DNA of 64,000 nt, from IMG/VR virus record IMGVR_UViG_3300008117_000011, positions 1 to 64,000 of that record. One strand, written 5' to 3'. Position 1 is the first letter of the stretch. Each line of letters opens with the position of its first letter. The notes under the pieces were generated by a model that searched no databases, was not told where the DNA came from, and saw only the letters and a list, made by a program, of their open reading frames with translations. This document shows, piece by piece, positions 1,672 to 58,652 of this stretch. Position numbers and translations under genes: made by a program.

Positions 1672-1712
1672 TTTAAATTTTTATAATCTTTTGTTTAATA
1701 AATGTTTTAATC

Positions 1713-3218
1713 TTATCTTGGGTCGGCTAAAGGTTTAATTGGGACTCTTTTTAAAAATTCAACAGTATAATTTGTTTGTGACTCCATCTCGCTAGGTTTC
1801 TTGCAGAACTGAACGTTGTCTTCTCTAACCCAACCATATTTATAACCTAAACCACCTTCGTGCATATCCTGTTGTAGGTTTAAAAATTCTACTTGATACC
1901 AAAGCATATTTTTGTATTTTTTTGGTAATTTTTTGTAAAGTTCATCTGTGTAGAAGTCAATTGCATTATTAATACCCATCCCAAGTATATAGTTTTTTTG
2001 TTTTTGATTTCCTGTTAATAGAACATCTTTTATTGTTTTTCCTTTAAACCCTGGTGCTGGTTCATTTGAAACCCCTTTAGTATCTAAATGAGATATTAAT
2101 TTATTTAGTTCTGTTTTTGATCCTATAATATTTTTAAAAAACTTTAAAAGTGTGTTATCATCACGTATTTGTCCGTTGTAAAAGGCCGAAACCGGTCTTT
2201 GTCTTTTTTGTGAGATATATTTTCCAACAACTTCATCACTTGACCAATTAATAAAATTATCAGTAGGGTCTAAAAGTCCTGTGTCATCATTTACCTCATT
2301 TGTTGTTCTTAAATTTACATAATTAACACCTTGTTTTAAACAGATATATTCACCACCAATAAATTCATTATTTTGTGAAACTGGTGATTGACTTATTAAC
2401 ATTTTTTCATCATTTGTTAGTGGTAAATGTGATGCCAAATCAAACCCACCAATTGCGGTTGAATCCATTGATAATTTTTTACTTTCAGTGTCCAAGTTTA
2501 AGTCTTCAATGTCAATTTTTTTAACTTTACCTTGATCAGTGTAACTGTAACTCATATCTGAACGAATAAGATATGGTGCTTGAGGTGTATAATTATTATC
2601 TGCTTGATATTTTTTATATTCCGTTAAAAACCAACTTGTATATGATAAATATATTTCATAAAAAGGATTTTGATTACCCGTATTCTCTAGAGCTTTTGAA
2701 AAGACCGAAAAACTCATAGTACACCCTTTTGGTTTGTTTTGGACGACAAGGTAAGAGTTATTCATACAATTGTAGACCAATTCTTCAAATGAGCTGTTTA
2801 TTTGGTCTTGAATTATTTTATCATTACTCAGTTTTGCGTAAATACCGGTTTTTTTTGATATTTGATCTTTGATTATTTGTACGTAATAATTACAAGCAGT
2901 TAATTCATTAGCTTTATTTTGTGCTAATAAATCTTGTTGCTGTTGAATGTATTCACTGGTTGATTTATTTTTATATGGAACAACACTAGCAAAATTTGGG
3001 GATACGTATTGTTTACCTGTTTTACAATCAATTATTGTTCTATCAGTTAGATTCTGATTACCTTCACTTGATGTTATTTTTGGTGATTGGTTTGATTGTT
3101 TTTTTGCGGTAATAGTTACTTCTGGTTGTGCACTAACCGGTTGTTCAGACAAAGTCTTTCTTGAGTCATATTTCATATTAAGAAGTATTCTTTTCAGTAT
3201 TTCATCAGAATTATTCAT
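1713..3218 (-). CDS. Hypothetical protein, 501 aa
   Basis: Long ORF; leader-like N-terminus (EILKRILLNMKY...LSEQ); SH3b-like YVNLR...GWVR motifs near the C-terminus. Confidence 0.8.
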   Translation of the reverse strand: MNNSDEILKRILLNMKYDSRKTLSEQPVSAQPEVTITAKKQSNQSPKITSSEGNQNLTDRTIIDCKTGKQYVSPNFASVVPYKNKSTSEYIQQQQDLLAQNKANELTACNYYVQIIKDQISKKTGIYAKLSNDKIIQDQINSSFEELVYNCMNNSYLVVQNKPKGCTMSFSVFSKALENTGNQNPFYEIYLSYTSWFLTEYKKYQADNNYTPQAPYLIRSDMSYSYTDQGKVKKIDIEDLNLDTESKKLSMDSTAIGGFDLASHLPLTNDEKMLISQSPVSQNNEFIGGEYICLKQGVNYVNLRTTNEVNDDTGLLDPTDNFINWSSDEVVGKYISQKRQRPVSAFYNGQIRDDNTLLKFFKNIIGSKTELNKLISHLDTKGVSNEPAPGFKGKTIKDVLLTGNQKQKNYILGMGINNAIDFYTDELYKKLPKKYKNMLWYQVEFLNLQQDMHEGGLGYKYGWVREDNVQFCKKPSEMESQTNYTVEFLKRVPIKPLADPR

Positions 3219-3460
3219 AATAAAGTATTTGCTTTACCTCGTGTAATTTTATTTAATGATTTCCAAGTTACCTTATCATCAATTGTATTCGCATTACTTC
3301 TAACAAGCCCTGTTTCCCATTTTGTAACAGCAGGATATGCACCTCCACCACCAGATGATGTTGCACCTCCTCCAGCGTCATCCTCCTCGCCCAATTCACC
3401 ATTGTTTGTTGGGTTAAATGTGTATTTCTCAAGAAGTCCTATTAATTGGTCTAACTCCAT
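3215..3460 (-). CDS. Small hypothetical phage protein
   Basis: 81 aa, Gly-rich linker, ATGA overlap with downstream gene, TATTTAT upstream. Confidence 0.75.
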   Translation of the reverse strand: MELDQLIGLLEKYTFNPTNNGELGEEDDAGGGATSSGGGGAYPAVTKWETGLVRSNANTIDDKVTWKSLNKITRGKANTLL

Positions 3461-3482
3461 AAAAATTTTTCTTTTATAAATA

Positions 3483-3512
3483 TTTGTAAATAGAAAAAAA
3501 ATAGTATCTTTG
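3483..3512 (+). promoter_or_regulatory. Bacteroidota-type primary-sigma promoter
   Basis: TTTG-N18-TATCTTTG upstream of 3542. Confidence 0.55.
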
Positions 3513-3541
3513 TGATATAGATAATATTTAAATAATAAGAT

Positions 3542-4045
3542 ATGAAACGAATTTTTGTACTTTTCTTTTTGCTTGGACTTGTAACTTCTTGTACAAAATA
3601 TGCAGAACCTAGTCTTCTTAGTCTGAGTGGCGAGTATCGTGTAGATAAAATCACGTACGAACAGACTGATAATACAACTAACTCAAATAATATGGTATTT
3701 TACCCGGGTGATATGTATATTAACCCAAATGATTCACACCCATTTGATACGATTCCGGTTGGTTTTTACAAATTACATTTTGATTATTCTATTGTTAGTT
3801 TTTCACCAAATCAGAATATGGATGGGTCAACAACTTGGTCTGAACAATATTTCTATCACGTTCATAATCAAACAACACAATATGCTGGTGATTTAGAAAT
3901 TGAGATGAATGGTTCAAAAAGAATGTTCTCAATTATTGAAGATGGTCTTGAGCATATTGTAATTAGGTCAAAAGGGGCCTGGTTCTCAGGGTCGTCTGGA
4001 CCAAACGAATCTATTACATTATTTTTAACAAGAACTGGTCCGTGA
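3542..4045 (+). CDS. Lipoprotein (lipocalin-like beta-barrel possible)
   Basis: MKR + hydrophobic stretch + LVTSC lipobox; LSGEY motif. Confidence 0.75.
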   Translation: MKRIFVLFFLLGLVTSCTKYAEPSLLSLSGEYRVDKITYEQTDNTTNSNNMVFYPGDMYINPNDSHPFDTIPVGFYKLHFDYSIVSFSPNQNMDGSTTWSEQYFYHVHNQTTQYAGDLEIEMNGSKRMFSIIEDGLEHIVIRSKGAWFSGSSGPNESITLFLTRTGP

Positions 4046-4062
4046 TAAACGGGCCTTTTTTA

Positions 4063-4365
4063 TTATAGGATTTCTGACTTTGGAAGTTTGTCTTGATTTA
4101 CAATGTAATATTCATTTAGAAAGGATATAAGCTGCTCTTCATCTATTGACTGGAACTCTTCATCATAATAGTCATCTTCTTCGTCCTCAAACCCAAAAAA
4201 ATCATTGGTATCATCAACTAAATCATACCCAAAATCTTTTGCCTCATTTAAATCAACAATATCATTTCTGATTTCATCATCCGAATCACTAGATAACCTG
4301 AAAGAAATTTCAATTCTTTTAGTATCCTCAAAAAGATAGTACGAAACTAACTCCTGTATTTCCAT
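4063..4365 (-). CDS. Acidic hypothetical protein
   Basis: 100 aa ORF in operon. Confidence 0.75.
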   Translation of the reverse strand: MEIQELVSYYLFEDTKRIEISFRLSSDSDDEIRNDIVDLNEAKDFGYDLVDDTNDFFGFEDEEDDYYDEEFQSIDEEQLISFLNEYYIVNQDKLPKSEIL

Positions 4366-4367
4366 TT

Positions 4368-4937
4368 TTAATTGTAGTTTTTAAATCTCTTAAACATATC
4401 TAAAGATTTATTTACACTTTCCATTAGATTATTATCCTCATCAAATTCGTCTAATGGTTGTGAACTAAAATCATCAAGCTCATCAATATCATACTCATAA
4501 TAGTCCTCCATCATTTCTTCAGTATCAATATCAAAAACAATATCCAAATTGTCGTCATCACAATTTTTACACTCACCATCATCTTTCATTCCAAGAGACA
4601 TATAATCAATTTCATCCTCGTTTGGTGAAGGATATAAATCATGCATAAAATCTGGATTATCCAAATCAACAGTTCCATTTTCTAAATCATCCGAACCATC
4701 AGCAATTTGATCTCTTCTATCAATATCTTCGTTAATTTTTGTATTTGTATAATGTTTTACCTCACCTTTATTTGATACTGTAATTCCGTTCTTATCATTT
4801 GCCAGATCTTGCACATAAAGAGGTTGCATGTTGGACCCATTTGCGTATTCTGTTACATAACCATCATAAAGTGATTTATGTTTGTCTAGAATATCATTTT
4901 TCTCAGTTTGAGACATCTTAAAGAAATATTGTGCCAT
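4368..4937 (-). CDS. Acidic hypothetical protein with EK..IL-type leader
   Basis: MAQYFFKMSQTEKNDILDKH; C-terminal LMES motif. Confidence 0.75.
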   Translation of the reverse strand: MAQYFFKMSQTEKNDILDKHKSLYDGYVTEYANGSNMQPLYVQDLANDKNGITVSNKGEVKHYTNTKINEDIDRRDQIADGSDDLENGTVDLDNPDFMHDLYPSPNEDEIDYMSLGMKDDGECKNCDDDNLDIVFDIDTEEMMEDYYEYDIDELDDFSSQPLDEFDEDNNLMESVNKSLDMFKRFKNYN

Positions 4938-4941
4938 ATTA

Positions 4942-5328
4942 TTATTTTTTACATTCTTTTATTATTTGTTTTTTTGTTTTAAAAAACAAAACGCTTTCAT
5001 TTATATCTTCAACATCATCAATTTCAACTACCTTTCTCCACTGATCAATAGGTTCTAATTCTGTACTTCCACAATTTTTACACTCTGGAAATTCAGAACC
5101 TTGTTCGTTTCCACATTGTTTACATATTCTACCGTCAATAAGTGCTAAACTAGAACCACTTTTCCAATTTACATAGTACTGATTTAATCCGAAGACGTTT
5201 GAAACTGACTTTACGACACCCGGTGTTCCTCCGGCAACACCAGAGAATTTATCAGACATATTAATACAAATTACTTTGTCACCAGGTTCTAATAGTACGT
5301 TTTTTTCATATTTAACTTTCTTTGCCAT
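4942..5328 (-). CDS. DUF4314-like SH3-fold protein with inserted double CxxC zinc ribbon
   Basis: GDKVICINM..D..GTPGVV...VNWKSGSSLALI motif; CKQC...CKNC. Confidence 0.6.
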   Translation of the reverse strand: MAKKVKYEKNVLLEPGDKVICINMSDKFSGVAGGTPGVVKSVSNVFGLNQYYVNWKSGSSLALIDGRICKQCGNEQGSEFPECKNCGSTELEPIDQWRKVVEIDDVEDINESVLFFKTKKQIIKECKK

Positions 5329-5349
5329 ACAAATATAAATATAGCGTAA

Positions 5350-5356
5350 TATTTAT
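5350..5356 (+). promoter_or_regulatory. TATTTAT putative phage (late) promoter, example
   Basis: TATTTAT-N5-ATG at 5362; the motif recurs before dozens of genes. Confidence 0.6.
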
Positions 5357-5361
5357 TTGTT

Positions 5362-5979
5362 ATGAAGATAATACTTACAGAATCACAATATAAAAATTTA
5401 ATACTTGAAAACTTAGGTAGGGAAACAATTAATAAATTAAAATCTCTTCAGGAATTCTTTGATAACGTATCTTCTGAAAGTAAAAAACAAATAGGATTAG
5501 ACTTAGGATTTCTTGCGACCTGGGGTGTTACAATTGCTGGTTTTGTCAGACCGATTAGTGAATTTATGAAAGGTGAATTTCCGGAACTAACATCAACGGA
5601 AATAATTCTTTTGTCAACTGGTGTAATTTTAACTTACTTTACAACAAACAAGGATAAACTAAGAAAAGTTCTTGATTTAATAAAAGAAAAGAATCTTATT
5701 TTTGAGTTTGACATAGTTCTTGAAAAGGCGGATAAGTTAAAAAACGTATTTTTTGCTTTTATTGATAGTCTTGCAATCCCTATAAGTAAGATATCAAATA
5801 TGCTTGCTTATACATTCATTATTCCGATAATTCCTGAACTATATGAAATGGCTCAAGGAAATGAATCAATGGATGTATCTGAAATGGTTGGTAGAGTTCT
5901 TGGTTTTGTTGGTATCACATATGGTGGAAATTTAACAAAAAGACTTCTTAATGAAATTGTAAGAAGATTTAAATCTTAA
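5362..5979 (+). CDS. Leader-tagged membrane-associated hypothetical protein
   Basis: MKIILTESQYKNLILE leader; hydrophobic segments. Confidence 0.8.
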   Translation: MKIILTESQYKNLILENLGRETINKLKSLQEFFDNVSSESKKQIGLDLGFLATWGVTIAGFVRPISEFMKGEFPELTSTEIILLSTGVILTYFTTNKDKLRKVLDLIKEKNLIFEFDIVLEKADKLKNVFFAFIDSLAIPISKISNMLAYTFIIPIIPELYEMAQGNESMDVSEMVGRVLGFVGITYGGNLTKRLLNEIVRRFKS

Positions 5980-6410
5980 TAATTTGAGTAATCACCATAA
6001 GCTTCTTCTGGATCCCAGAATAGACCTAAAGTAATTTCACTAAATTCTGAATAAGATAAATTAACTTCGTGTATTATTATACCCCTAAATGAATTTGTCT
6101 TTTTATTAAGTTTTAAGTCTCTTGATAAACCCACTTGACAAATCTCTTGAACTACATTAAAATACCATTTTAAATTATCACCAATTGCGTCAGGTTCAAA
6201 ATCACAATTATCACAATCTGCGTTTTTTATTGTTAAACCTAAACTAATTTCATAAACTCGTTTTTTACCTTCTTTCCAATCAAAATCAATGTTGTCTAAT
6301 TGAATTAAAATATCACCTCTATCAATTTGTGGATTTAAACCAAGATTTACTGTTACATAGTTTTTTAATGTTTCAATTCTTGTTTGTAATTCTTGTGGGA
6401 TTTGTTTCAT
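5976..6410 (-). CDS. Hypothetical protein
   Basis: 144 aa ORF. Confidence 0.7.
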   Translation of the reverse strand: MKQIPQELQTRIETLKNYVTVNLGLNPQIDRGDILIQLDNIDFDWKEGKKRVYEISLGLTIKNADCDNCDFEPDAIGDNLKWYFNVVQEICQVGLSRDLKLNKKTNSFRGIIIHEVNLSYSEFSEITLGLFWDPEEAYGDYSNY

Positions 6411-7006
6411 TATCTATGATTTAATATTTTGTTTATCACATCTGGTATTTGCTCATCACTTAATCTGTGAACTTCTTTGTTTTTTTCAAACCAGTTCTTA
6501 ATTACAAAATCAAGAGGTTTTTGTGTTATTTTAGCAAGTCTTTTAAAACCGAATAATTGGGCATCAAGTTCTTTTGGTTGTGTGTAATACTCATAAGGGT
6601 CTTCCGGTTCATCCCCACCAAGTTCATAAGTTCCCTTTATGTTTTGATCTACGTGTCTTATTTCGTGAGCTATTAACTCATTTAGTTCACCAATTAAATC
6701 ATACATAATCTGCATTTTTACCTCTGGGTTATATTCAATACGGATAATAATTATATCATCCTCGTGTAAATATTCCCCATTGATTATAAATGATTGGATC
6801 TCATCATTTTTTACAAGTTGCATTTCAACCGATAGTGGTGTTGGGAGTTCTTTAAATTCATAAAAATCTTTTTCTTCATCAAAGTAATTTGGAAGGTAGA
6901 ATTCACCATCTTCTTCTATTTTAAAGACTTTTGTAATACCAGACACTATTTGTCTTATTACATTTCTTCTTCTGTTGTCTTCAAGTAAAATTTGTTCTTT
7001 GGTCAT
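6410..7006 (-). CDS. Zincin-like metallopeptidase-motif protein
   Basis: IAHEIRHVDQ (HExxH) plus downstream ELDA; start re-called at MTKEQ behind TATTTAT. Confidence 0.6.
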   Translation of the reverse strand: MTKEQILLEDNRRRNVIRQIVSGITKVFKIEEDGEFYLPNYFDEEKDFYEFKELPTPLSVEMQLVKNDEIQSFIINGEYLHEDDIIIIRIEYNPEVKMQIMYDLIGELNELIAHEIRHVDQNIKGTYELGGDEPEDPYEYYTQPKELDAQLFGFKRLAKITQKPLDFVIKNWFEKNKEVHRLSDEQIPDVINKILNHR

Positions 7007-7105
7007 ACAAATAAATATGTAAAGGTTATTAATATAACTATAAAAAAAATACACCAAAAATAAATTATGGTGTATTTTTTAATTTTTTATTAAAATAAAA
7101 TTATT

Positions 7106-7894
7106 TTAACCAAGAGTTTCAGTACATAACATTGTTATTTGTTCTGGCGTTAAAGATTCACCCATTTTCAATTGATTAAGAGCGTCTTGCGTTTTACAAC
7201 CCCAATAACCATCATCTTTAATACCAAGTGTTGGTAATTTTTTAGCTAAACATCTTTGTACTTCTTTTATTTTTTCACATTTATCACACTTGTGGTAATG
7301 TTGTGATTGTGAACAATCTTTGTATGCTGGACAAGCAGGAATTCCACTAGGGCATTTTTTAGTTGGGCTTACTTGTGATCCTTTACATTTATAACCATCC
7401 TCACCTAGTTTAGCCCAAGCTTTACTTCCAGGTCTATCGGTATCAGGCTTTAATTTTGTTCCACAACAAAACATTGATTTCATTTTTCCTATAAAATCAA
7501 CCGGGTCTGTATATATATACTCATATCTGTCAACCCAATTACCGCTATCGTCCTTCAATTTTCCAATTACTTTATTAGAATCACATTTTATTGTTAATAA
7601 CTCCCGATAAGCATAACCTCGTTGTAAATTATTCCAAAATGTTATCGCATTAAATCTTTCATCTCCCCAAACGACCGTTCCAAGTTTTAATTCAGCTGTT
7701 ACACCTTTACCACCTCCTTGTCCAATTTCTTGACCTCTAAAAGTAACATCGCCTTGAGTTATGTATTGACCTTTTTCGTTAAGAATATCCTTTTCTTTAC
7801 TATATTGCTCAAGAATTGGCTTTAAAGATAAGTTTTTGTGCATATCTAATATTCTTCTTTTTTCTTCTTCTGAAATTAAAATTCTTTTGTTCAT
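7106..7894 (-). CDS. Leader-tagged Cys-rich protein with C-terminal peptidoglycan-binding-like motif
   Basis: MNKRILISEEEKRRIL leader; IKEVQRCL...DGYWGCKTQDAL resembles PG_binding_1. Confidence 0.65.
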   Translation of the reverse strand: MNKRILISEEEKRRILDMHKNLSLKPILEQYSKEKDILNEKGQYITQGDVTFRGQEIGQGGGKGVTAELKLGTVVWGDERFNAITFWNNLQRGYAYRELLTIKCDSNKVIGKLKDDSGNWVDRYEYIYTDPVDFIGKMKSMFCCGTKLKPDTDRPGSKAWAKLGEDGYKCKGSQVSPTKKCPSGIPACPAYKDCSQSQHYHKCDKCEKIKEVQRCLAKKLPTLGIKDDGYWGCKTQDALNQLKMGESLTPEQITMLCTETLG

Positions 7895-7938
7895 AATTTA
7901 ACTTTTATTATAAATATATTTGATTATAAAAAAATAAT

Positions 7939-8859
7939 TTAAGTTTGATTTTTACTAGAGCAAAAATCACCATTTTGTACATAATAAGACCCAATGTCTG
8001 CAAGATTAAAAACATATGAAGGTATTTTCATTAATTCTTGGTATTTAGGATTGTTAATTACCCATTCTGGAACATTTATACAACCGGATGATAAATTTGA
8101 TGATTTATTTATACTTTCATCATCTAAATCAAAAATTGTTCTATCTTTTGCCTTAATTAATGCGTCTTTTCTTTCTGGATCATTTAATACTTTATGAATT
8201 GCTTGTGACAATAACTTACCATCTAATGTTTTTAAATATGTGTAGGGAACACTTAAATTACTTGTTGTATATATACCAGGATTTAAAGAGGCTCCACCAC
8301 TAAATTCAAAAACCTCTTTATCGGAAACATCACTAACTTTTTTATTTTTATATTTTGCAATATAAGCCCTTCTTTCTTCAAAATTTAAAAGATTAAATTT
8401 TTTAAATTCGTCTGATGTTGCTTGTTTTTCTCTACCGGTAATAATTGGAATTGGGGATTTTTTTTGTAAATCTTCATATGGCGTCACATCGTTTAATTCT
8501 TTATCAAAAAAATAAATTGTATGTCGCATAGAGTTTATAATTATTATATTTTTATCTCTAAATCTTGGTCTTATTGCAATGAGTCCCATTTCGCAAGCCG
8601 TATAAGTTTCAACCCCATCTGAAATTAATTTTGTTGCAAATAACTGAATATCATTATTTATTCCTGAAAAAACAACATTTAAATCATCAGTATTTAACTT
8701 TGTTTTGTACTTTGCAATAATTTCATCGTAATCAACAACATTAGTTTTTGATGATTCGTCAAATTTAAGACAAGAGTTTTCGGTCTGTTCAGTTACAATA
8801 CCATATAAATTTTTTATGTGGTTTTTTTCACTTTCTGTTATGACAAATCTTTTACTCAT
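7939..8859 (-). CDS. Leader-tagged L,D-transpeptidase (YkuD)-like protein
   Basis: AIH...LSSGCINV His/Cys catalytic motif; MSKRFVITESEK leader. Confidence 0.55.
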   Translation of the reverse strand: MSKRFVITESEKNHIKNLYGIVTEQTENSCLKFDESSKTNVVDYDEIIAKYKTKLNTDDLNVVFSGINNDIQLFATKLISDGVETYTACEMGLIAIRPRFRDKNIIIINSMRHTIYFFDKELNDVTPYEDLQKKSPIPIITGREKQATSDEFKKFNLLNFEERRAYIAKYKNKKVSDVSDKEVFEFSGGASLNPGIYTTSNLSVPYTYLKTLDGKLLSQAIHKVLNDPERKDALIKAKDRTIFDLDDESINKSSNLSSGCINVPEWVINNPKYQELMKIPSYVFNLADIGSYYVQNGDFCSSKNQT

Positions 8860-10095
8860 TTAAAATTCTTTAATTTTTACAATTAGTTCACCATCACCTT
8901 TGATTACTCTGTGGTAAACACCTTTAGGGATAAATATTGTTTGCCCTTCCTTTAGTTGTTTTGGTATTTCATTATCCATTTGTAGTTTCCACCCATTTGA
9001 TTTGACAACTTTTACTTTTCTATCCCTTTCGTCAAAATGCCATTTTAGTTCGTGTTCATTTATACCACTTTTAAATGTTCTACGTTTAACACCACTTTCA
9101 TTTACCTCATCAAATGGTAAGTCATCTGTATTTTGTTGTTTTGGTCCTAACTTGGGGTCTAGTAAATATTTTTCATTTAACCAGTTTCTTAATTCGTTTT
9201 CAACAAAGTATTCCGGAACCTCTTCATCTTCTGGTTTCGTACTTGCGATATCAGCAATATACCTAGCAAATTGAATTTTGTCGTTTTCTCTAATCATAGC
9301 TAAAAGGCCGTCCGATATAAAAAATATTTTAGATAATGGATCCTCAACGTTTAGTTCACCCTCAAATACATCAAAAGCCTTAAGGGTCATCTTTCCCCAC
9401 CAGGTTCTATATTTTTCAGTATCCTCAAGTGCCGGTCTTACAATTTTATTTATAGCCCTTGTAATTGATGCGGCGGCTCCAGCTAATGCAATTTGTGGTA
9501 AAAACCAGGGTAATAATCTTAATGTCGCTTTATACCCACCAACACCAAGATGTGTAAAAATTCTTTTTCTTGTTGCAGATTCAAATATTGCTTCTAGTTG
9601 ACCAAAAGTTATTTTTCCTTGTGCCTTACAAAACTTTTCAGAATCACAAATATTTTTTATGGCTCTTCCAGATGGGTTAACCTTTTCCTGGATGTTATTC
9701 CCAGTGACATATGTAATTGGGTTGGGTGGTCTTTGATTAAATAAAAAATTCACCATAAAGGTGCCTCCCAATCCAAAGTAATTATCCAGATTAAACTCCA
9801 ATATCTTTGAACCTCTGTCAAACATTACTTCTAAAAAAAAATTTTGAGGTATATCGTTTGATGTGCTATCAATAAAAAAAGTAACCCCTAACTCATCTGA
9901 CTTGTAATCAGAAAAATCTTCACCTGGTATATAAGGTTCCTTTGGTTTTATGTCAATTCCATATAAACTAAAGTCAAATTTACCACTATAATTTTTTTTA
10001 TACCTTTCACTAAAAGCCGGCTCAACCACTTTTTTTAAAAAGTAGTTAAATTTTTTAATGTAATTTGGGTTTGTAAATTTATCAAATAAATTCAT
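8860..10095 (-). CDS. Multi-module protein with C-terminal cupin domain
   Basis: WHFDERDR...GWKLQMD...IFIPKGVYHRVIKG cupin motif; modules separated by IQE/VNE. Confidence 0.7.
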   Translation of the reverse strand: MNLFDKFTNPNYIKKFNYFLKKVVEPAFSERYKKNYSGKFDFSLYGIDIKPKEPYIPGEDFSDYKSDELGVTFFIDSTSNDIPQNFFLEVMFDRGSKILEFNLDNYFGLGGTFMVNFLFNQRPPNPITYVTGNNIQEKVNPSGRAIKNICDSEKFCKAQGKITFGQLEAIFESATRKRIFTHLGVGGYKATLRLLPWFLPQIALAGAAASITRAINKIVRPALEDTEKYRTWWGKMTLKAFDVFEGELNVEDPLSKIFFISDGLLAMIRENDKIQFARYIADIASTKPEDEEVPEYFVENELRNWLNEKYLLDPKLGPKQQNTDDLPFDEVNESGVKRRTFKSGINEHELKWHFDERDRKVKVVKSNGWKLQMDNEIPKQLKEGQTIFIPKGVYHRVIKGDGELIVKIKEF

Positions 10096-52955: not shown

Positions 52956-53321
52956 TTAATTTTTCAAAACATTATTAAGAAATTTTCTAATTGTTTTGAT
53001 TATTTTCTGTTTTTTTGGGTGTTGATCCGGTAATTCAAAAAAATCATCACCAATCAAATCTGTTTCTTCAACAAGTAATGATAAAATATTATTCATCATT
53101 TCTTTTTTAGTTCTATAACTATTAAAACCATAACCTGGAAAACCTTCAAATGTATATTCAATTACCTTTAAAGGTTCTTCTTCCGTTTCAAAGTTAGACC
53201 AATTAAGTTTTTTTTCTTCAACTTTAATTCTTCTCATTAAAAAAAGTAAAATGTCAGAATCAAACTCCTCGTGTTTTGAGGAAATTTGATTCTTTTCATT
53301 TTCATTAATTATGATTTTCAT
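52956..53321 (-). CDS. Leader-tagged protein, paralogue of the second module of 29731
   Basis: MKIIINENEK; ILLFLMRR...QKIIKTIRKFLN. Confidence 0.75.
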   Translation of the reverse strand: MKIIINENEKNQISSKHEEFDSDILLFLMRRIKVEEKKLNWSNFETEEEPLKVIEYTFEGFPGYGFNSYRTKKEMMNNILSLLVEETDLIGDDFFELPDQHPKKQKIIKTIRKFLNNVLKN

Positions 53322-53845
53322 TTAAGAAATTTCAATTTATAAAGTGTTGAATTAACTAGTTCTTGAACTGTGTCAATCTGGTTTTGGATAAAACTATCGT
53401 CTACTGAATCTCTATTTTCTTCAATTATATCAAGTAGTCTTTCAAAATAAGAAATTGTCTTTTTACCATTCTTGTATTGCTCAATTTTGAATGACTTAAA
53501 GTTTTTCATTATACCATACTTTCCTTGGTAAGATTCAACTATCGCATCAAACAAAGGAACAACGGCATCATAATAACCATTAAGAGCAATATGTTCGGCG
53601 TATGATTTTGTTTGTAGGTGAAATACGTGAGCCTGATTTCTTGAGTGTAGTATATTACACATCATATCACAAAAGTCATCGTTTGAATCTGAATCATCTT
53701 CTACCTCATCAGTGTCGTCATCATCATCTTCGTCCTCTTCCTCGTCTTCCATTTCATCCTCAAGTTCGTCTTCATCTTCATCTTCCTCAAAGATATTTCT
53801 TTTTTTTAATTCTTCAAAAAGTTTATCACTTAGATTTTTTTCCAT
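53318..53845 (-). CDS. Ferritin/Dps-like (DUF5856-like) protein with acidic N-terminal extension
   Basis: QAHVFHLQTKSYAEHIALNGYYD...D.IVESYQGKYG...IQNQID...TLYKLKFL. Confidence 0.75.
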   Translation of the reverse strand: MEKNLSDKLFEELKKRNIFEEDEDEDELEDEMEDEEEDEDDDDDTDEVEDDSDSNDDFCDMMCNILHSRNQAHVFHLQTKSYAEHIALNGYYDAVVPLFDAIVESYQGKYGIMKNFKSFKIEQYKNGKKTISYFERLLDIIEENRDSVDDSFIQNQIDTVQELVNSTLYKLKFLK

Positions 53846-53882: not shown

Positions 53883-54587
53883 TTAGATAAATTCAAGAAT
53901 ATTTGTCACCTGATCCCACTCAAAAGTAACCGGTTTGTTGCGAAATTCATATCTTCCATTAAGAACCGCAGCATTGATGAAATGTGTTTGACCATCAAAT
54001 ACATAACCAAACCCTTCGTGAATATGGCCAAAAATATTGATTTTGGGTCTAATCTCCTCAATTCTTTTAAGAAGTTCTTCGCAACCAACATTCATATTGC
54101 CATAACCAACATAATCAAGTTTACCATAAGGAGGTCCGTGAGTAATAAGAATGTCAGTTCCGGCCGGAATCATATCCCACTTCTCTTTAAGTTTTTCACC
54201 ACGAGGAAGATTAAATGCCCAGTTATGAAATTCTGGCTGCCAAGGAGTTCCCCATATTTTAAGCATGTCATCATACTCAACTTCACCTTCACCAAGAAAC
54301 ATAAAATCATCTTGTAGGTAATCAATATTTTTGTAACCGGTAAGAATACCTTTCACCTTCAATAAATCATCCTGGAAGCCAAAATCGTGGTTTCCGGCAA
54401 TAAAAATCTTATGGTCGTAATTATCAATTTTATCATACCAAGTTGCAAAATTTTCAATTTCGGTAAGATATCCTCTACTAGTAATATCACCAGCACAAAT
54501 AAGAATATCACCACCGGGTAAAAAACCATCTAGTTTATTATGTTTAGTGTGAGTATCACTAATACAAGTTATTTTCCATTTTTTCAT
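53883..54587 (-). CDS. Calcineurin-like metallophosphoesterase (MPPED-type)
   Basis: ISDTH, AGD, IAGNHD, ITHGPP, FGHIHE. Confidence 0.9.
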   Translation of the reverse strand: MKKWKITCISDTHTKHNKLDGFLPGGDILICAGDITSRGYLTEIENFATWYDKIDNYDHKIFIAGNHDFGFQDDLLKVKGILTGYKNIDYLQDDFMFLGEGEVEYDDMLKIWGTPWQPEFHNWAFNLPRGEKLKEKWDMIPAGTDILITHGPPYGKLDYVGYGNMNVGCEELLKRIEEIRPKINIFGHIHEGFGYVFDGQTHFINAAVLNGRYEFRNKPVTFEWDQVTNILEFI

Positions 54588-54609
54588 AATACAAATATAA
54601 TAAAAAAAA

Positions 54610-54705
54610 TTAGATTGGTAATTTAATTTTAGATAATAATTGATTTGAGACGTGGGTGTATATCTCAGTTGTTTTTACATTACTATGACCGGCTATTTTT
54701 TGTAT
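54610..54705 (-). pseudogene. C-terminal relic of a tyrosine recombinase (IntI/Xer-like box II)
   Basis: Hand translation IQKIAGHSNVKTTEIYTHVSNQLLSKIKLPI*; contains catalytic His and Tyr; in-frame TGA just upstream, no start. Confidence 0.85.
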
Positions 54706-54787
54706 TGGTCAAAAAACCAATATTTTCCCATTTTGTGATTAATTCATTTGAGTTTTGTTCTTTTAATGTTTTTAATAATTCTCCCAT
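54683..54787 (-). pseudogene. Truncated ORF fused out of frame onto the integrase relic
   Basis: MGELLKTLKEQNSNELITKWENIGFLT then runs into integrase DNA and stops. Confidence 0.45.
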
Positions 54788-54798
54788 AATTTTTTTTA

Positions 54799-55005
54799 TT
54801 AATTAATTTTTTCATATTTAGTTTCCACAGCTCTTAGAATATCGTCACTGACAAAACAATTATTTTTTATTGACCATATTGATTCCATTTTTAAGAAGGG
54901 TTCATAACCACTAATTAAAACAATGTATTCTTCCATTTTTAAACCTTTTGTAGTTTTTTTAGTTGTTGTTAATCTATAACAACCAGCGTTAAATAGTGTT
55001 TTCAT
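54799..55005 (-). CDS. Small hypothetical protein
   Basis: 68 aa, ATGA-coupled. Confidence 0.6.
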   Translation of the reverse strand: MKTLFNAGCYRLTTTKKTTKGLKMEEYIVLISGYEPFLKMESIWSIKNNCFVSDDILRAVETKYEKIN

Positions 55006-55295
55006 TTTTTATTTATTTTTAAAATTTCATTAAACATTTCTTTAGTAGTTTTACCAACAAAATTATCATATTTACCTTCTTTAATTTCCTTACTTGTTTG
55101 ATGTTGGTCAATACATAATAAAGCTAATGAATCTATAGACATAGGATATATTCCACCAATTAAATTTAATGTGTTATTTATTGGTAAGTTTTTAATAAAA
55201 CCATCTTTAAATAATACAAAATCTTCATCGGTTACCCAACAATCACAACCAAAGTCTATTATTCTATTTTTAATTAATTCTATCTTATCACTCAT
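55002..55295 (-). CDS. Hypothetical protein
   Basis: Start re-called at MSDKIELIK after a TATATTTG promoter near 55313-55320. Confidence 0.6.
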   Translation of the reverse strand: MSDKIELIKNRIIDFGCDCWVTDEDFVLFKDGFIKNLPINNTLNLIGGIYPMSIDSLALLCIDQHQTSKEIKEGKYDNFVGKTTKEMFNEILKINKK

Positions 55296-55363
55296 ATAAC
55301 CAGTTTTATTCACAAATATACTAATTTATTTTGATAATATCAACCCAATGCACAAAATACTAT

Positions 55364-55417
55364 GTATAACAAATGATAAACAACATTAAAACGATTGTTT
55401 ATCATCGGACGTTAGCA
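55364..55417 (+). mobile_element. attC-like site A (short)
   Basis: GTATAAC-AA-ATGATAAACAA-cattaaaacga-TTGTTTATCAT-CGGAC-GTTAGCA. Confidence 0.75.
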
Positions 55418-55693
55418 AACATTAGACTGTGCTATAATTTTCAACCGAAGTTCTTTTATAATACCATCCCATTTATTAGCCATATCAAAGCAATATTGTT
55501 TTTCTTTACTTGATACAGTTCTTCTATATCCATCACCAGTATCATAAATATATCTAATTGAATAGTGTTGGAAATTATCTCTTGCATATTGCCATTGTTC
55601 AAACAACGTCATTTCATCCCAACTCTTAACACAACGTTTGCTAACAAAGTATAAACGTAATGTTTTCAGTCTTCCAATCAATCTTTTTATCAT
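55412..55693 (-). CDS. Cassette-1 gene (starts in site B loop, stops in site A core)
   Basis: MIKRLIGRLKTLRLYFV-SKRC...NVC*; the stop is the TAA of TAAC. Confidence 0.7.
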   Translation of the reverse strand: MIKRLIGRLKTLRLYFVSKRCVKSWDEMTLFEQWQYARDNFQHYSIRYIYDTGDGYRRTVSSKEKQYCFDMANKWDGIIKELRLKIIAQSNVC

Positions 55694-55759
55694 AATTTTT
55701 TAGTTTTGTATTTCAAATTAAGTTCAGTTAAACACTACGTTTATACTCAACCGTTATGT
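55639..55759 (+). mobile_element. attC-like site B (long)
   Basis: TGCTAAC-AA-AGTATAAACGTAATG...CACTACGTTTATACT-CAACC-GTTATGT. Confidence 0.8.
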
Positions 55760-55966
55760 GTAATAAGTTTTGTCTGTTTCATCTGAAAATCCTTTACTAA
55801 CATTTATACAATCATTTTTATCACACCACTTCATCCCACACCAGTTTTTACAACGAACATTATTATCGCTCAATCCATCTAATACTTTTTCTATATCAGA
55901 CTTATTACCACACATAACAAAGTATAAACGTAATGTTTTCAGTTTTTCAATCAATCTTTTTATCAT
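55754..55966 (-). CDS. Cassette-2 gene (Cys-rich; starts in site C loop, stops in site B core)
   Basis: MIKRLIEKLKTLRLYFV-MCG...YYT*. Confidence 0.7.
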   Translation of the reverse strand: MIKRLIEKLKTLRLYFVMCGNKSDIEKVLDGLSDNNVRCKNWCGMKWCDKNDCINVSKGFSDETDKTYYT

Positions 55967-56031
55967 AATTTCAAGTTTTGTATTTCAATTTAAGTTCAGT
56001 TAAGCACTACGTTTATACTCAACCGTTATAC
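55912..56031 (+). mobile_element. attC-like site C (long, near-copy of B)
   Basis: ACATAAC-AA-AGTATAAACGTAATG...CACTACGTTTATACT-CAACC-GTTATAC. Confidence 0.8.
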
Positions 56032-56043
56032 TCAATAAAAAAA

Positions 56044-56139
56044 TTATTTTAAGTTTTTAAGAGCCATAAACCCACAATATATTGCACCTAAACCACATAA
56101 AACCATTACAGCCAATAATATAATTTTAACTACTATCAT
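56044..56139 (-). CDS. Cassette-3 gene, 31 aa TM peptide
   Basis: MIVVKIILLAVMVLCGLGAIYCGFMALKNLK read by hand. Confidence 0.55.
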   Translation of the reverse strand: MIVVKIILLAVMVLCGLGAIYCGFMALKNLK

Positions 56140-56179
56140 TTTTTTTAATTTTTTAATTTGTAAATAATTTTTTAACTAA

Positions 56180-56233
56180 GTATAACAAAGAATATGTGTC
56201 ATTAAAACGAACACATATTCTCAACCGTTATAT
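56180..56233 (+). mobile_element. attC-like site D (short)
   Basis: GTATAAC-AA-AGAATATGTGT-cattaaaacga-ACACATATTCT-CAACC-GTTATAT. Confidence 0.75.
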
Positions 56234-56297
56234 ATACCTTACCGGTTGTTAATATTTTTTTAAATCCCATAATGTAAATATAGTAGTATTTATTGAT

Positions 56298-56891
56298 ATG
56301 AAAAAGTTTATATTATTTTTATTTTTAGTTTTTCCTTTTGTTTCTTTATCACAAAAAAAATTAAGAGATAGTGTCATTGTAAATGCTGACATATTCAAAA
56401 TCATTTATTCAGAAAAACTACAACAACCTCTTTCTGTAAAATATAATGTTCAATGTCCTTCTGGATCTGCGTCAAGAAAAGGTCTTGATTTTTTTACTTG
56501 TGATTCAATATTAACTTCAGATGGTAAGGATTATGATAACAATGTTTGGGATAAAGGTCATATGGCACCTGCCGCGGATTTTAATTGTACAAGAGATCTA
56601 ATGAAAAAAACTTTCACTTATTTAAATTGTACTTTACAACATCAAGATCTTAATAGAACCACTTGGAGGCTTTTAGAAACATATGAAAGATCGTTAGCTT
56701 TAAAATATAAAGTAGTTTCGGTTGAGGTTATTTGTGAATTTACTAAATCCTCTAAAGTGTTACCTTCAGGTGCAACTATACCCGATGGTTATTATAAAAT
56801 AATTAAATATAATAACACAACCGAAACCTATTATTTCAAAAACGAAAAACCTTCTTCAACTGATTATAAAAAATATCAAGTTAAAGGTTGA
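56298..56891 (+). CDS. Secreted DNA/RNA non-specific endonuclease (NucA/EndoG family)
   Basis: Signal peptide; WDKGHMAPAAD...TFTYLN..LQ...LN..TW..LE. Confidence 0.85.
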   Translation: MKKFILFLFLVFPFVSLSQKKLRDSVIVNADIFKIIYSEKLQQPLSVKYNVQCPSGSASRKGLDFFTCDSILTSDGKDYDNNVWDKGHMAPAADFNCTRDLMKKTFTYLNCTLQHQDLNRTTWRLLETYERSLALKYKVVSVEVICEFTKSSKVLPSGATIPDGYYKIIKYNNTTETYYFKNEKPSSTDYKKYQVKG

Positions 56892-57270
56892 TCTCAAACC
56901 GGGATTTCATCGTTTGAATCTTATCTTCCGGAACTCCGTGCTTATTCACACCTCCGTGTCTATTTTCAACAATTACTGAAAATACGGTGTATCCATATTC
57001 TTTGGCCATATTTACATAAGGCTCCATCTCCCACTCTTGTGTGAAAGTGTTTGACACAACAATTTTTGGGTATTCCAAAATCATATCCCCTTTAACCATT
57101 CCCTGACACCACTGGTGAGCATCTTTAATCTTTGTTGGGTCAAAATTGTAATTACCGGATTCACCAATAAAATACATATCAGCCTCATAGTGATTGCCAC
57201 CCAGTGTTTTTGCAAATGTTGATTTTCCGGATCCCGGAATTCCTCTTACGATATAAAGTACTTTTTCCAT
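56881..57270 (-). CDS. P-loop (AAA_33 / N4BP2-like) kinase
   Basis: VRGIPGSGKST, EADMYF, VSNTF, HGVP; start re-called at MEKVL. Confidence 0.85.
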   Translation of the reverse strand: MEKVLYIVRGIPGSGKSTFAKTLGGNHYEADMYFIGESGNYNFDPTKIKDAHQWCQGMVKGDMILEYPKIVVSNTFTQEWEMEPYVNMAKEYGYTVFSVIVENRHGGVNKHGVPEDKIQTMKSRFEINL

Positions 57271-57271
57271 C

Positions 57272-57481
57272 TTATTCTGATTTAAAGGTTTCGTTGTAGT
57301 ATTGTTCAACATTCCTATCCGCTTCCATTATAGCATCAACCCCTCCTTGCACATAGAAATTATATAAATGCTCCTTCTCCATTTCTTTGGCTTTTTCAAA
57401 TGCCTTTCCCATTTCTAATAAGTTGCCAGAATGTTTTATGTATTGCTCTTTTAACCATTCTACTGCTGTCTGTTTTTTCAT
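57272..57481 (-). CDS. 'KQTAVEWL...YYNETFKSE' small phage protein
   Basis: Common small-protein pattern in Bacteroidota phages. Confidence 0.7.
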   Translation of the reverse strand: MKKQTAVEWLKEQYIKHSGNLLEMGKAFEKAKEMEKEHLYNFYVQGGVDAIMEADRNVEQYYNETFKSE

Positions 57482-57493
57482 ATCATACACGTT

Positions 57494-57706
57494 TTAAAGG
57501 GTATCTCCTATTTGCCATTTACCACAATCAGCATAAAATCTAGTATAGTCCCATTTACCTATAAATACATATTCACACCTACCATTTCTATATTGTGTAA
57601 TCTCAGCACATATAGAAATTCCTTCTTTTATCTCCTTTCCATTATAATGATTGTCACAACTTACTAATATCATCATAATAAAAACTCCAATTAAGTATTT
57701 TCTCAT
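57494..57706 (-). CDS. Small lipoprotein
   Basis: MRKYLIGVFIMMILVSC lipobox. Confidence 0.65.
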   Translation of the reverse strand: MRKYLIGVFIMMILVSCDNHYNGKEIKEGISICAEITQYRNGRCEYVFIGKWDYTRFYADCGKWQIGDTL

Positions 57707-57825
57707 ATCACACACGTTTTATAAATTAGACATAAAAAAGCTGTAATTATACAACTCCCACATATAAACAAAAATCTTTTGTTGGGGGATAAATCTTCCC
57801 ATAACCATTTGTTAAATCTTTCCAT
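57703..57825 (-). CDS. 40 aa TM micro-protein
   Basis: MERFNKWLWEDLSPNKRFLFICGSCIITAFLCLIYKTCVI. Confidence 0.5.
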   Translation of the reverse strand: MERFNKWLWEDLSPNKRFLFICGSCIITAFLCLIYKTCVI

Positions 57826-57843
57826 ATCACACACGTTTTAAAA

Positions 57844-57906
57844 TTAAGGTCTATCACCCCAAGTAAACACTTGTTCTTCTAACCATTCTACTGCTGTCTT
57901 TTTCAT
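57844..57906 (-). pseudogene. Truncated KQTAVEWL paralogue, 20 aa
   Basis: MKKTAVEWLEEQVFTWGDRP*. Confidence 0.5.
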
Positions 57907-57921
57907 CTTATTCTGATTTAA

Positions 57922-57999
57922 TTATCTTTTCATTATGTTGTAACACATTGCGATTCCAGTAATCATTCCCATTAAAAAAAATATAATCTCTAGGTGCAT
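57922..57999 (-). CDS. 25 aa hydrophobic micro-protein
   Basis: MHLEIIFFLMGMITGIAMCYNIMKR. Confidence 0.45.
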   Translation of the reverse strand: MHLEIIFFLMGMITGIAMCYNIMKR

Positions 58000-58074
58000 C
58001 TTATTCTGATTTAAAGGTTAATAAATTTAATTACTACTAATGGTTGTTCTTCATTTTCTGATTTTATTCTCATC

Positions 58075-58221
58075 TTATTCTGATTTAAAGGTTAAAGGGT
58101 TTTCTGTCCAAATTGTGCCATCATCTTCTCTCATTGCTTCAATCATTGTCCAAGCAAACCAATAGGGTAAACTTACTGGAAGAAATATAATTGATAATAT
58201 TACTATTTGATATCTTTTCAT
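58075..58221 (-). CDS. 48 aa TM micro-protein ending TFKSE
   Basis: MKRYQIVILSIIFLPVSLPYWFAW...LTFKSE; TATATTTG 4 nt before ATG. Confidence 0.55.
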   Translation of the reverse strand: MKRYQIVILSIIFLPVSLPYWFAWTMIEAMREDDGTIWTENPLTFKSE

Positions 58222-58238
58222 ATCACAAATATAATAAA

Positions 58239-58652
58239 TTATTCTGATGTTTCTAATCTTTCAAGCATTTCTTTTATTCTCTTTACAGATTTTTCTTTTA
58301 ACGGTAATGGATTTCCATCTTCATCAATATATACAAATTTGGTATGTGTCTTTAGAACAACAGCTTGTCTACCGGTCCTTACATTGTGAGCTCTTGCTTC
58401 AATATATAATGTAACTGATGTATTTCCAATAGACGCCGGATATCCAAATATTTTAAGTAGTTGTCCTTCTTTACTTGGTTTTTCAAATACACATTTGTCA
58501 ATTGACACTGTGACCATTCTTGGTGTGTCACATAGTTGCATCGCATAAGCAACAGCGGCTGCGTCAAGCCATGCCAATAATTTTCCACCAAAAAGATTTC
58601 CGTGAAATCCAAGATCTGATTTTTTAATTGGGTGTGTTGTTATTAATTCCAT
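58239..58652 (-). CDS. Acyl-CoA thioesterase (hotdog fold, YciA-like)
   Basis: DLGFHGNLFGGKLLAWLD...MVTVSID...IGNTSVT...FVYIDEDG.P. Confidence 0.85.
   Translation of the reverse strand: MELITTHPIKKSDLGFHGNLFGGKLLAWLDAAAVAYAMQLCDTPRMVTVSIDKCVFEKPSKEGQLLKIFGYPASIGNTSVTLYIEARAHNVRTGRQAVVLKTHTKFVYIDEDGNPLPLKEKSVKRIKEMLERLETSE

Follow-up and report, generated by a model that had tools for sequence, protein, structure and literature searches.

A relic integron-like cassette array in a large freshwater phage

Results

A large freshwater phage carries the probable remains of an integron-like gene-capture platform

We found that a large freshwater phage carries the decayed remains of a gene-capture platform that is built like a bacterial integron, and that in intact relatives this platform sits next to a shorter Xer-type recombinase. 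No description of this family was found in the papers that could be searched. The window we analyzed is a stretch of 64,000 nucleotides (positions 1 to 64,000 of the IMG/VR record IMGVR_UViG_3300008117_000011) of a 223,671-bp genome, and coordinates refer to this window unless marked as genome positions. A preceding sequence-only reading had noted four imperfect palindromes that delimit segments with complementary ends, as well as a tyrosine recombinase fragment on the minus strand, and had interpreted them as a decayed, phage-borne integron used to acquire and shuffle very small genes. The observation was confirmed, while the interpretation was supported only in part, as detailed below.

All four palindromes exist and share, on the plus strand, the layout TAAC, AA, stem, loop, stem, C(A/G)(A/G)(A/C)C and GTTA. 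Measured from core to core, sites E1 (55367-55414) and E4 (56183-56230) are 48 bp long with an 11-bp stem and an identical 11-nt loop (CATTAAAACGA) but different stems, whereas E2 (55642-55756) and E3 (55915-56028) are 115 and 114 bp long and 94% identical to each other. E1, whose 5-nt spacer before GTTA reads CGGAC, is the innermost surviving site. The sequence CAACCGTTA occurs only four times in the genome, always in these elements. A covariance model of the 48-bp hairpins hit E1 with 86.9 bits and E4 with 80.3 bits, and found no further sites in the genome beyond E1, E4, E5 and E6. A second locus, which lies outside the window at genome 84484-84895 and was missed by the sequence-only reading, comprises two more hairpins around one 81-aa ORF with an R box of 10/10, and the E1 site type recurs there at genome 84484-84536 as well as in many related phages. 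The hairpins fold as predicted, with DNA z-scores of -2.7 to -5.9 for the 48-bp ones. Moreover, nine of the 11 stem pairs show compensatory changes across 12 family members, with 0 of 500 shuffles as good, even though these figures are inflated because the members were picked by a scan that requires pairing. An Rfam scan of positions 54000-57000 and of the related phage locus L049 (L numbers denote loci of our collection of relatives) gave only noise, Rfam holding no attC model.

The hairpins delimit three small cassettes whose own two ends are complementary over GTTA+6 against 6+TAAC. Cassette 1 (55412-55753, minus strand), taken from the TTA of the E1 core to the G of the E2 core, comprises segment 55411-55645 with an R box of 10/10 and its own distal hairpin E2. 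Its ORF (55412-55693, 93 aa) starts in the E2 loop, and its stop codon is the TAA of the core. Cassette 2 (55754-56025, minus strand) comprises segment 55753-55918, with an R box of 9/10 followed by a 2-nt offset and six more pairs, and hairpin E3. Its Cys-rich ORF (55754-55966, 70 aa) starts in the E3 loop and likewise stops at the core TAA. Cassette 3 (56026-56227, minus strand) comprises segment 56025-56186, with an R box of 9/10 and an extended complementarity of 22/25, and hairpin E4, while its ORF (56044-56139) encodes a 31-aa hydrophobic peptide. The distal edge of the array (56227-56240, plus strand) reads GTTATATATAC, which is the core plus a flank with no cassette behind it, and is followed by a nuclease gene (56298-56891, plus strand). 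Genome-wide, only seven perfect 10/10 pairs are spaced 60-1500 bp apart, two of which are hairpin-bounded cassettes. To find other genomic contexts of cassette 1, we searched viral contigs with its protein and metagenome contigs with its exact DNA sequence, but both searches returned only the same phage at 100% identity.

The integrase fragment (54610-54708, minus strand) reads PIQKIAGHSNVKTTEIYTHVSNQLLSKIKLPI* and consists of the last 32 codons plus the stop, including the second catalytic His and the Tyr motif (GH...IYTH), without a start codon and preceded by a stop. It hits positions 150-170 of PF00589 (E 3.8e-4), is 84-93.5% identical to the C-terminus of the 266-aa integrases in L007/L049, L055 and L058, and shows DNA homology to those genes from about 54708 onwards. 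It sits next to the phosphoesterase gene, as in L049, L064 and L070, and its orientation, with the 5' end facing the array, is typical of the family. The stretch that replaces the integrase N-terminus and the attI-like site described below (54709-55366, minus strand) holds two ORFs of unknown function at 54799-55005 (68 aa) and 55002-55313 (103 aa), which have no homologues in other arrays and no Pfam hit. As the left flank of E1 has no R-box partner, these ORFs do not fit the cassette rule and could not be shown to be cassettes. The platform of this phage is decayed, given that PF00589 hits only the fragment, that no attI-like site was found anywhere in the genome with a position weight matrix, and that the array is identical in three samples.

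Intact relatives combine a full-length recombinase, an attI-like site and variable cassette arrays

To understand whether the fragment and the hairpins belong together, we examined related phage contigs, addressing two conditions that had been set beforehand as grounds for rejecting the integron reading, namely absence of the IntI insertion together with absence of linkage to such sites, and invariant content between the sites. A full-length integrase followed by an array occupies the same genomic position in L007/L049, and all six catalytic residues (R, K, H, R, H, Y) are invariant in 28 homologues. At the 64 integrase loci in viral contigs, a strict scan found 136 hairpins in one orientation and 2 in the other, in arrays of up to eight, and all but one, a non-consensus hit, lie on the 5' side of the integrase. 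The 35 phosphoesterase-matched relatives without the integrase have none beside that gene, although one of them (L026) has a single orphan site about 4.7 kb away. However, some complete or large phages (LR756500.1 at 462 kb; another phage, G004, at 389 kb and 100% complete) have arrays but no integrase. No close integrase homologue was found in cultured phages, where the best match was 41% identical (Cellulophaga phage Ingeline). Polaribacter phage Freya isolates vary in length upstream of a 36%-identical integrase, but a loose hairpin scan of these gave only noise.

The integrase genes are preceded by a conserved attI-like site (..TATATAATA|GTTA). All 50 distinct integrase-upstream regions have a GTTA 31-52 bp from the start codon, 47 of them show the ..TATATA(A/T)ATA|GTTA consensus, and in at least 25 loci the 6 nt after GTTA are complementary to the left flank of the first hairpin. 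All hairpins collected by the scan, which requires TAAC and GTTA, fit one layout. Furthermore, 28 of 76 cassettes have exactly 10 perfect pairs between their own ends, compared to 1.9% for ends of different cassettes and 1 of 134 for the two flanks of one hairpin.

Cassette contents are almost all different between loci, and the encoded proteins have no known family. As only near-identical phages share cassettes, DNA-level cassette homologues did not reveal which hairpin travels with a cassette; this question was settled instead by the attI-like junction and by the pairs L100/L102 and L007/L009, which support a unit made of a segment plus its distal hairpin. Near-identical phages differ by whole cassettes, with homology breaking at GTTA: L092 and L093 are 99.97% identical and diverge immediately after the attI-like GTTA, while L100 and L102 (92-96% identical) differ only between the attI-like GTTAG and the GTTA that follows the second hairpin. 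In one near-identical pair (L062/L063), homology breaks about 35 nt before TAAC rather than at the core, and ordinary homologous recombination therefore also reshuffles these arrays.

A homologous system is present in Flavobacterium chromosomes, with a 45% identical integrase, hairpins of about 125 bp and the same 9-10-bp R box in 33 of 44 cassettes.

The recombinase and its sites differ from those of IntI-type integrons

The comparisons support the reading of the palindromes as recombination-type sites with a conserved TAAC/GTTA core and cassette-specific complementary ends, and of the fragment as the C-terminus of the recombinase that belongs to them. Even though the full-length homologues are tightly linked to the arrays and cassette content varies, the reading as an IntI-type integron was not supported. 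Against the Vibrio integrase VchIntIA (2A3V), the match splits into query 11-177 with chain 10-180 and query 208-263 with chain 259-314, so that about 48 residues of VchIntIA have no counterpart, and the Foldseek alignment to 2A3V needs 308-315 columns for a 266-aa query. The Flavobacterium homologue is colinear with the phage protein and matches the IntI profiles in two stretches on either side of the insertion region. Scores fall below the cut-offs of the curated integron-integrase models (149.6 and 197.1 bits against 265 for TIGR02249; 91.3 and 119.8 against 435 for NF011946) but also below those of the Xer models (180.9 and 210 against 220 for XerA_Arch; 136.6 and 177.3 against 329.6 for XerD; 131.5 and 170.7 against 335 for XerC). 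The protein scores highest on the XerA model, TIGR02249 is the second-best NCBIfam hit, and VchIntIA ties with XerA as the best structural match. The placement of the enzyme rests on these HMM scores and the structure match.

The sites differ as well. The attC sites of integrons reportedly carry extrahelical bases in the L box and a roughly symmetric unpaired central spacer (Bouvier 2009; Nivina 2016). In the phage hairpins, the 11-bp stems are perfect, without extrahelical bases, and the spacer is 2 nt against 5 nt, which folds on the minus strand as a continuous helix with a 3-nt bulge. Lastly, 74 of 76 phage cassettes have the ORF on the integrase strand, read towards the integrase with the hairpin 5' of it, which is the reverse of classical cassettes, whereas the classical order holds in 38 of 44 Flavobacterium cassettes.

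Discussion

We consider it likely that the window holds the stranded remnant of an integron-like gene-capture platform found in large phages of Bacteroidota, probably Flavobacteriia. In intact relatives, this platform would consist of a 266-aa Xer-type tyrosine recombinase, an attI-like site 30-50 bp upstream of its start codon and an array of small cassettes, each ending in a hairpin site made of six cassette-specific nucleotides plus TAAC, a short unpaired spacer, an 11-bp or longer stem, a variable loop, a 5-nt spacer and GTTA. What the comparisons show is that cassettes are exchanged as units of a segment plus its distal hairpin, with the boundaries inside GTTA. The recombination itself is inferred by analogy with integrons: the recombinase would cut at the G/TTA of a folded single-stranded hairpin, likely on the strand that is minus in the window, which can form G-T wobbles where the other strand has A-C mismatches, and would join it to the attI-like site or to another hairpin, while an excised cassette would be a circle in which the two ends pair into a 10-bp R box. 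Recognition of folded DNA by this enzyme is likewise an inference, as it lacks the IntI insertion that MacDonald et al. 2006 tie to hairpin recognition (as cited in PMC8138268). In this view, a deletion or replacement removed the attI-like site and all but the last 32 codons of the integrase in the present phage, leaving three cassettes at 55412-56227 and one more at genome 84.5 kb. Their sites look intact, but as no recombinase is encoded in cis, they could now move only if a co-infecting phage or the host supplied one.

Several alternatives could account for parts of these data, but we consider each of them unlikely. A decayed canonical integron, as the sequence-only reading proposed, would fit the TAAC/GTTA cores, which match the AAC/GTT cores of the attC R''/R' boxes, as well as the R and L boxes, the variable loop, the complementary cassette ends and the TIGR02249 and VchIntIA matches, but is contradicted by the missing insertion, the low scores, the perfect stems and the reversed ORFs. 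Similarly improbable is that the hairpins are intergenic regulatory elements, such as terminators or promoter-plus-stem-loop modules like the PeSLs of T4-type phages, shuffled by homologous recombination between repeats. They do sit between small genes in a variable region, E2 and E3 contain the start codon of the neighboring ORF, the L062/L063 break lies outside the core, and arrays occur in phages without the integrase. A scan for G+C-rich stems followed by a T run found no terminator-like sites, and one based on the sigma-70 consensus, which Bacteroidota do not follow, counted 22 promoter-like sites against 17 +/- 4.2 in shuffles. A regulatory role predicts neither that each gene's own two ends are complementary while the two flanks of one hairpin are not, nor the fixed polarity and position relative to an integrase gene, the hairpin-less attI-like junction or the clean breaks at GTTA.

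The same objections apply to the even less likely possibility that the complementarity acts in RNA, with the 5' and 3' ends of each cistron pairing and the hairpins serving as processing or stability elements on the minus-strand transcript. This reading draws on the conserved A-C mismatches of the plus strand, which become G-U wobbles on the minus strand, the mRNA sense strand in the phage. Yet in the homologous Flavobacterium arrays the wobble-capable strand is antisense to the ORFs, which are on the plus strand in 38 of 44 cassettes, and the asymmetry therefore follows the attI-like site and integrase side rather than transcription. Least likely are miniature transposable elements, or IS200/IS605- or REP-like elements moved by a single-strand transposase, despite the terminal inverted repeats, subterminal hairpins and conserved tetranucleotide. 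No Y1 transposase (PF01797, no hit at E <= 1) and no serine recombinase were found in the 223,671-bp genome, the terminal repeats differ from cassette to cassette beyond GTTA, unlike in a transposon family, and the arrays are head-to-tail and anchored to a tyrosine recombinase gene.

Among described systems, integrons (for example, the class 1 and Vibrio chromosomal integrons) share with the phage platform a tyrosine recombinase gene next to a non-palindromic primary site, followed by a head-to-tail array of small cassettes that each end in an imperfect palindrome with AAC/GTT cores, an R box, an unpaired spacer, an L box and a variable loop. They also share the boundary at G/TT(A), R-box halves that complement each other within one cassette rather than those of the neighboring cassette, highly variable contents mostly of unknown function and strand asymmetry. 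Besides the differences in integrase, stem and ORF direction described above, the phage R box is 10 bp long, and the carriers are phages of about 100-290 kb. The remark of the sequence-only reading that integrons are not described on lytic phages is out of date, as attC clusters were reported in virulent phages (Qi et al. 2023, PMC9892861), and the array in the window is, descriptively, such a cluster of cassette sites without an integrase in a phage that has no integration machinery. The sites in that study were found with the IntegronFinder/HattCI attC models and recombined by IntI1, and its complete integrons were in temperate phages and prophages of Vibrio, Escherichia and Shewanella hosts; none pairs a phage-encoded insertion-less integrase with an attI-like site, and the present system was not reported there. 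With regard to Xer recombinases, the enzyme has the size and fold of a Xer protein, and CTX-phi, which integrates through a folded single-stranded attP, shows that a Xer enzyme can use a folded hairpin as substrate. However, XerC/D-dif and archaeal XerA systems use one dif site per replicon, and the pdif modules of Acinetobacter plasmids are 28-bp double-stranded sites in alternating orientation; arrays of directly repeated hairpins beside the recombinase gene are not known from them. The PeSL cassettes of T4-type phages (Arbiol et al. 2010) are likewise small phage genes in hyperplastic regions, reportedly bracketed by stem-loop repeats and shuffled as modules, possibly through circles, but these repeats are thought to recombine by homology and are not known to have a dedicated recombinase, an attI-like site, a conserved crossover core or cassette-specific end complementarity.

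Integrons are defined by the IntI insertion, and surveys that rely on it report almost none in Bacteroidota, namely In0 elements and one complete integron, in Salinibacter (PMC9024848). Here, the same architecture appears with a recombinase that such surveys would discard, in at least 64 phage contigs of up to 288 kb, in hundreds of metagenomic protein clusters and in at least 16 sampled Flavobacterium and other Bacteroidota genome loci with two or more hairpins beside a homologous integrase. For this window alone, the result is a stranded remnant and not an active platform. Beyond it, we think it slightly more probable than not that Bacteroidota and their large phages carry a widespread, so far unrecognized family of integron-like platforms, of which the window shows a decayed member, and whose short Xer-type enzyme services folded-hairpin cassettes and an attI-like site without the IntI insertion. 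This would mean that hairpin-cassette recombination either does not need the IntI-specific domain or arose a second time. The phage-borne version is turned round, such that each cassette carries its hairpin, and often its start codon, upstream of the gene, and it may serve large lytic phages as an exchangeable store of small accessory genes, possibly anti-defence genes. If the mechanism is confirmed, the range of integron-type gene capture would extend to a major phylum and to virulent-type large phages, there would be a natural test of which protein features are needed to recognize folded DNA sites, and the arrays would point to a pool of very small, fast-turning-over phage genes as candidates for host-takeover or anti-defence functions.

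A cassette-like array with complementary ends in a freshwater phage genome

The 223,671-bp IMG/VR virus record that begins with the window was estimated by CheckV to be 76% complete and has a GC content of about 29%. The public sequencing runs that hold it are lake and freshwater metagenomes, the same sequence occurs at 100% identity in two other assemblies, and a neighbouring nuclease gene resembles one of Flavobacterium phages. The four palindromes and the integrase fragment picked out in the sequence-only reading were confirmed. Indeed, four elements share one layout on the + strand, namely TAAC, AA, stem, loop, stem, C(A/G)(A/G)(A/C)C and GTTA. Elements E1 (55367-55414) and E4 (56183-56230) are 48 bp long, with 11-bp stems of different sequence and the same 11-nt loop, whereas E2 (55642-55756) and E3 (55915-56028) are 115 and 114 bp long and 94% identical. 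The loop, CATTAAAACGA (window 55384-55394 and 56200-56210; columns 29-39 of the hairpin alignment A1), stays nearly the same across four different stem sequences in many phages, which suggests a function of its own, such as protein binding or a promoter element. The three segments between the elements start with GTTA plus 6 nt and end with the complementary 6 nt plus TAAC, with 10/10, 9/10 and 9/10 matches, the third extending to 22/25. By contrast, the two flanks of any one hairpin pair only through TAAC/GTTA.

A second, single-cassette locus lies outside the window at genome 84484-84895 (4484-4895 of the extracted region L003), far from the integrase relic. It comprises an E1-type 48-bp hairpin, an 81-aa minus-strand ORF with a perfect 10/10 R box, and a further hairpin of 86 bp. 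A covariance model of the 48-bp type found no more sites in the genome. In folding predictions the hairpins fold as drawn and are somewhat more stable on the minus strand. Nine of 11 stem pairs show compensatory changes among 12 family members, with the caveat that these members were chosen by a scan that requires pairing. The integrase fragment comprises 32 codons at 54610-54708 (-) and has no start codon. Nearby, the 175-aa protein encoded at window 53318-53845 (-) has a long Asp/Glu run, which draws low-complexity nucleotide matches from many unrelated phages.

Intact integrase loci in related phages

To understand what the fragment derives from, we examined related viral contigs. A contig found through the E2 arm (L007/L049) has a complete 266-aa tyrosine recombinase gene between a phosphoesterase homologue and a hairpin array, and the C-terminus of this recombinase is 84% identical to the fragment; two further loci, L055 and L058, reach 93.5%. 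The phosphoesterase gene lies downstream of the integrase in several such contigs, as in the window. In L007/L049 a GC-rich stretch of about 300 bp (2700-3000), with a run of ten G and no Rfam match, lies between the integrase stop and the phosphoesterase gene; it is absent from the window, where only 22 bp separate the two. At the distal end of the L007 array (761-1057) only the left arm of an E2-type hairpin survives, and it is read as an internal part (LIEKLKTLRLYFV) of a 98-aa ORF with an unrelated N-terminus.

In total, 64 integrase loci were recovered from viral contigs of up to 288 kb. A strict hairpin scan gave 136 hits in the window's relative orientation against 2 in the other, and all but one, a non-consensus hit, lay on the 5' side of the integrase. 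Loci without hits mostly lacked upstream sequence. Conversely, 35 relatives matched by the phosphoesterase but lacking the integrase have no array beside that gene, although one of them (L026) has a single orphan E1-type site about 4.7 kb away. In about ten of these relatives the homologue of the gene at window 58239-58652 directly abuts the phosphoesterase gene. The whole 3.6-kb stretch at window 54590-58230, comprising the relic, the array, the nuclease gene, a kinase-like gene and small ORFs, is therefore a variable insert region.

Cassette boundaries and an attI-like junction

Among 76 distinct phage cassettes, the run of perfect complementarity between a cassette's own ends peaks at exactly 10 (28 of 76), while the rate is 1.9% for ends of different cassettes and 1 of 134 for hairpin flanks. 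All 50 distinct integrase-upstream regions have a GTTA 31-52 bp from the start codon with no hairpin on the integrase side, and 47 of them show the conserved ..TATATA(A/T)ATA-GTTA. In at least 25 loci the next 6 nt are complementary to the left flank of the first hairpin. A cassette is therefore a segment plus the hairpin distal to the integrase, and the integrase-proximal junction behaves like attI.

Comparisons of closely related contigs bear on these boundaries. L092 and L093 are 99.97% identical and diverge immediately after this GTTA, and L100 and L102 (92-96% identical) differ only between the attI-like GTTAG and the GTTA after the second hairpin. L007 and L009 share one cassette with the same distal hairpin type but different proximal hairpins. 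One pair, L062/L063, breaks about 35 nt before TAAC, so homologous recombination also acts on these arrays. Cassette contents are otherwise almost never shared, and 70 cassette proteins gave no meaningful Pfam or PHROG match.

The recombinase lacks the IntI insertion

Next, we compared the full-length enzyme with known recombinases. It contains PF13495 and PF00589. The NCBIfam models rank XerA_Arch first (181 bits, cut-off 220) and integron integrase second (150 bits, cut-off 265), so that neither cut-off is reached. Against VchIntIA the match splits around a gap in which about 48 IntI residues have no counterpart, while an AlphaFold model (mean pLDDT 87) matches XerA and VchIntIA about equally. 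The catalytic R, K, H, R, H and Y residues are invariant in 28 homologues. The defining IntI insertion is therefore absent. The proposal, made from sequence alone, that the phage carries a decayed integron was thus only partly supported, as the architecture is integron-like but the recombinase is not of the IntI type.

Strand asymmetry and a host counterpart

The consensus of 102 distinct hairpins is TAAC-AA-nnnnTA..TAnnnn-CAACC-GTTA, with AAT at +6..+8 and AAC at -9..-7. The conserved A-C oppositions on the + strand become G-T wobbles on the minus strand, which turns the 2/5-nt spacer into a 3-nt bulge in a continuous helix. In phages the minus strand is also the coding strand, as 74 of 76 cassettes have their ORF there; 16 ORFs start inside the distal hairpin, and 11 use the core TAA as their stop codon.

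Homologues at 42-49% identity occur in many Flavobacterium and other Bacteroidota genomes. In these bacterial chromosomes, for example at L191 5764-12795 (Flavobacterium mekongense NZ_CP174374.1) and at the further bacterial loci L116, L144, L145, L148, L152, L185 and L190, an integrase gene (45% identical) is followed on its own strand by arrays of hairpins of about 125 bp with the same TAAC..GTTA cores. The R box is 9-10 bp in 33 of 44 cassettes, and ORFs are in the classical order in 38 of 44. An attI-like junction is visible in L191, whose protein is colinear with the phage one and also lacks the insertion. Because the wobble-capable strand is antisense to the ORFs in bacteria and sense in phages, the asymmetry follows the recombination polarity rather than transcription.

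Among cultured phages, the Polaribacter phage isolates Freya_1 to Freya_10 (MT732463-MT732472) differ by 0 to about 4.1 kb of small ORFs upstream of a 36%-identical integrase, but a loose hairpin scan of Freya_10 1-9459 showed nothing above noise.

Relation to previous work and state of the platform in this phage

Previous work using IntI/attC models reported attC clusters in virulent phages and complete integrons in temperate ones (Qi et al. 2023, PMC9892861). IntegronFinder 2.0 found only In0 elements and one complete integron (Salinibacter) in Bacteroidetes (PMC9024848), and Smyshlyaev et al. note that the insertion is not fully conserved in their 'integron-like' subgroup (PMC8138268). Our literature searches found no description of the present platform, although they covered an incomplete collection and prior description cannot be excluded.

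In the genome studied here, PF00589 hits only the fragment in 223,671 bp, and a position weight matrix of the attI-like site gave no hit, although true sites score 20-21. Neither a Y1 transposase nor a serine recombinase was found. Other huge phages also carry arrays of the same hairpin cassettes without the integrase, namely the 462-kb uncultured phage LR756500.1 (L005 5000-7600) and a 100% complete record of 388,594 bp (G004); these include an E2-type hairpin 92.6% identical to that of the window, and neither phage gave any tyrosine recombinase hit.

Taken together, our comparisons establish the anatomy of the arrays, their linkage to the integrase, the attI-like junction, the replacement of cassettes as units at GTTA and the absence of the IntI insertion. 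That the enzyme would cleave at G/TTA, act on folded single-stranded DNA, choose the minus strand and generate circular intermediates, and that the remaining cassettes might be mobilised in trans, are inferences. The hairpins of this phage match the family consensus, and the array is invariant in three samples. We conclude that the array is a stranded remnant, comparable to a cluster of cassette sites without an integrase.
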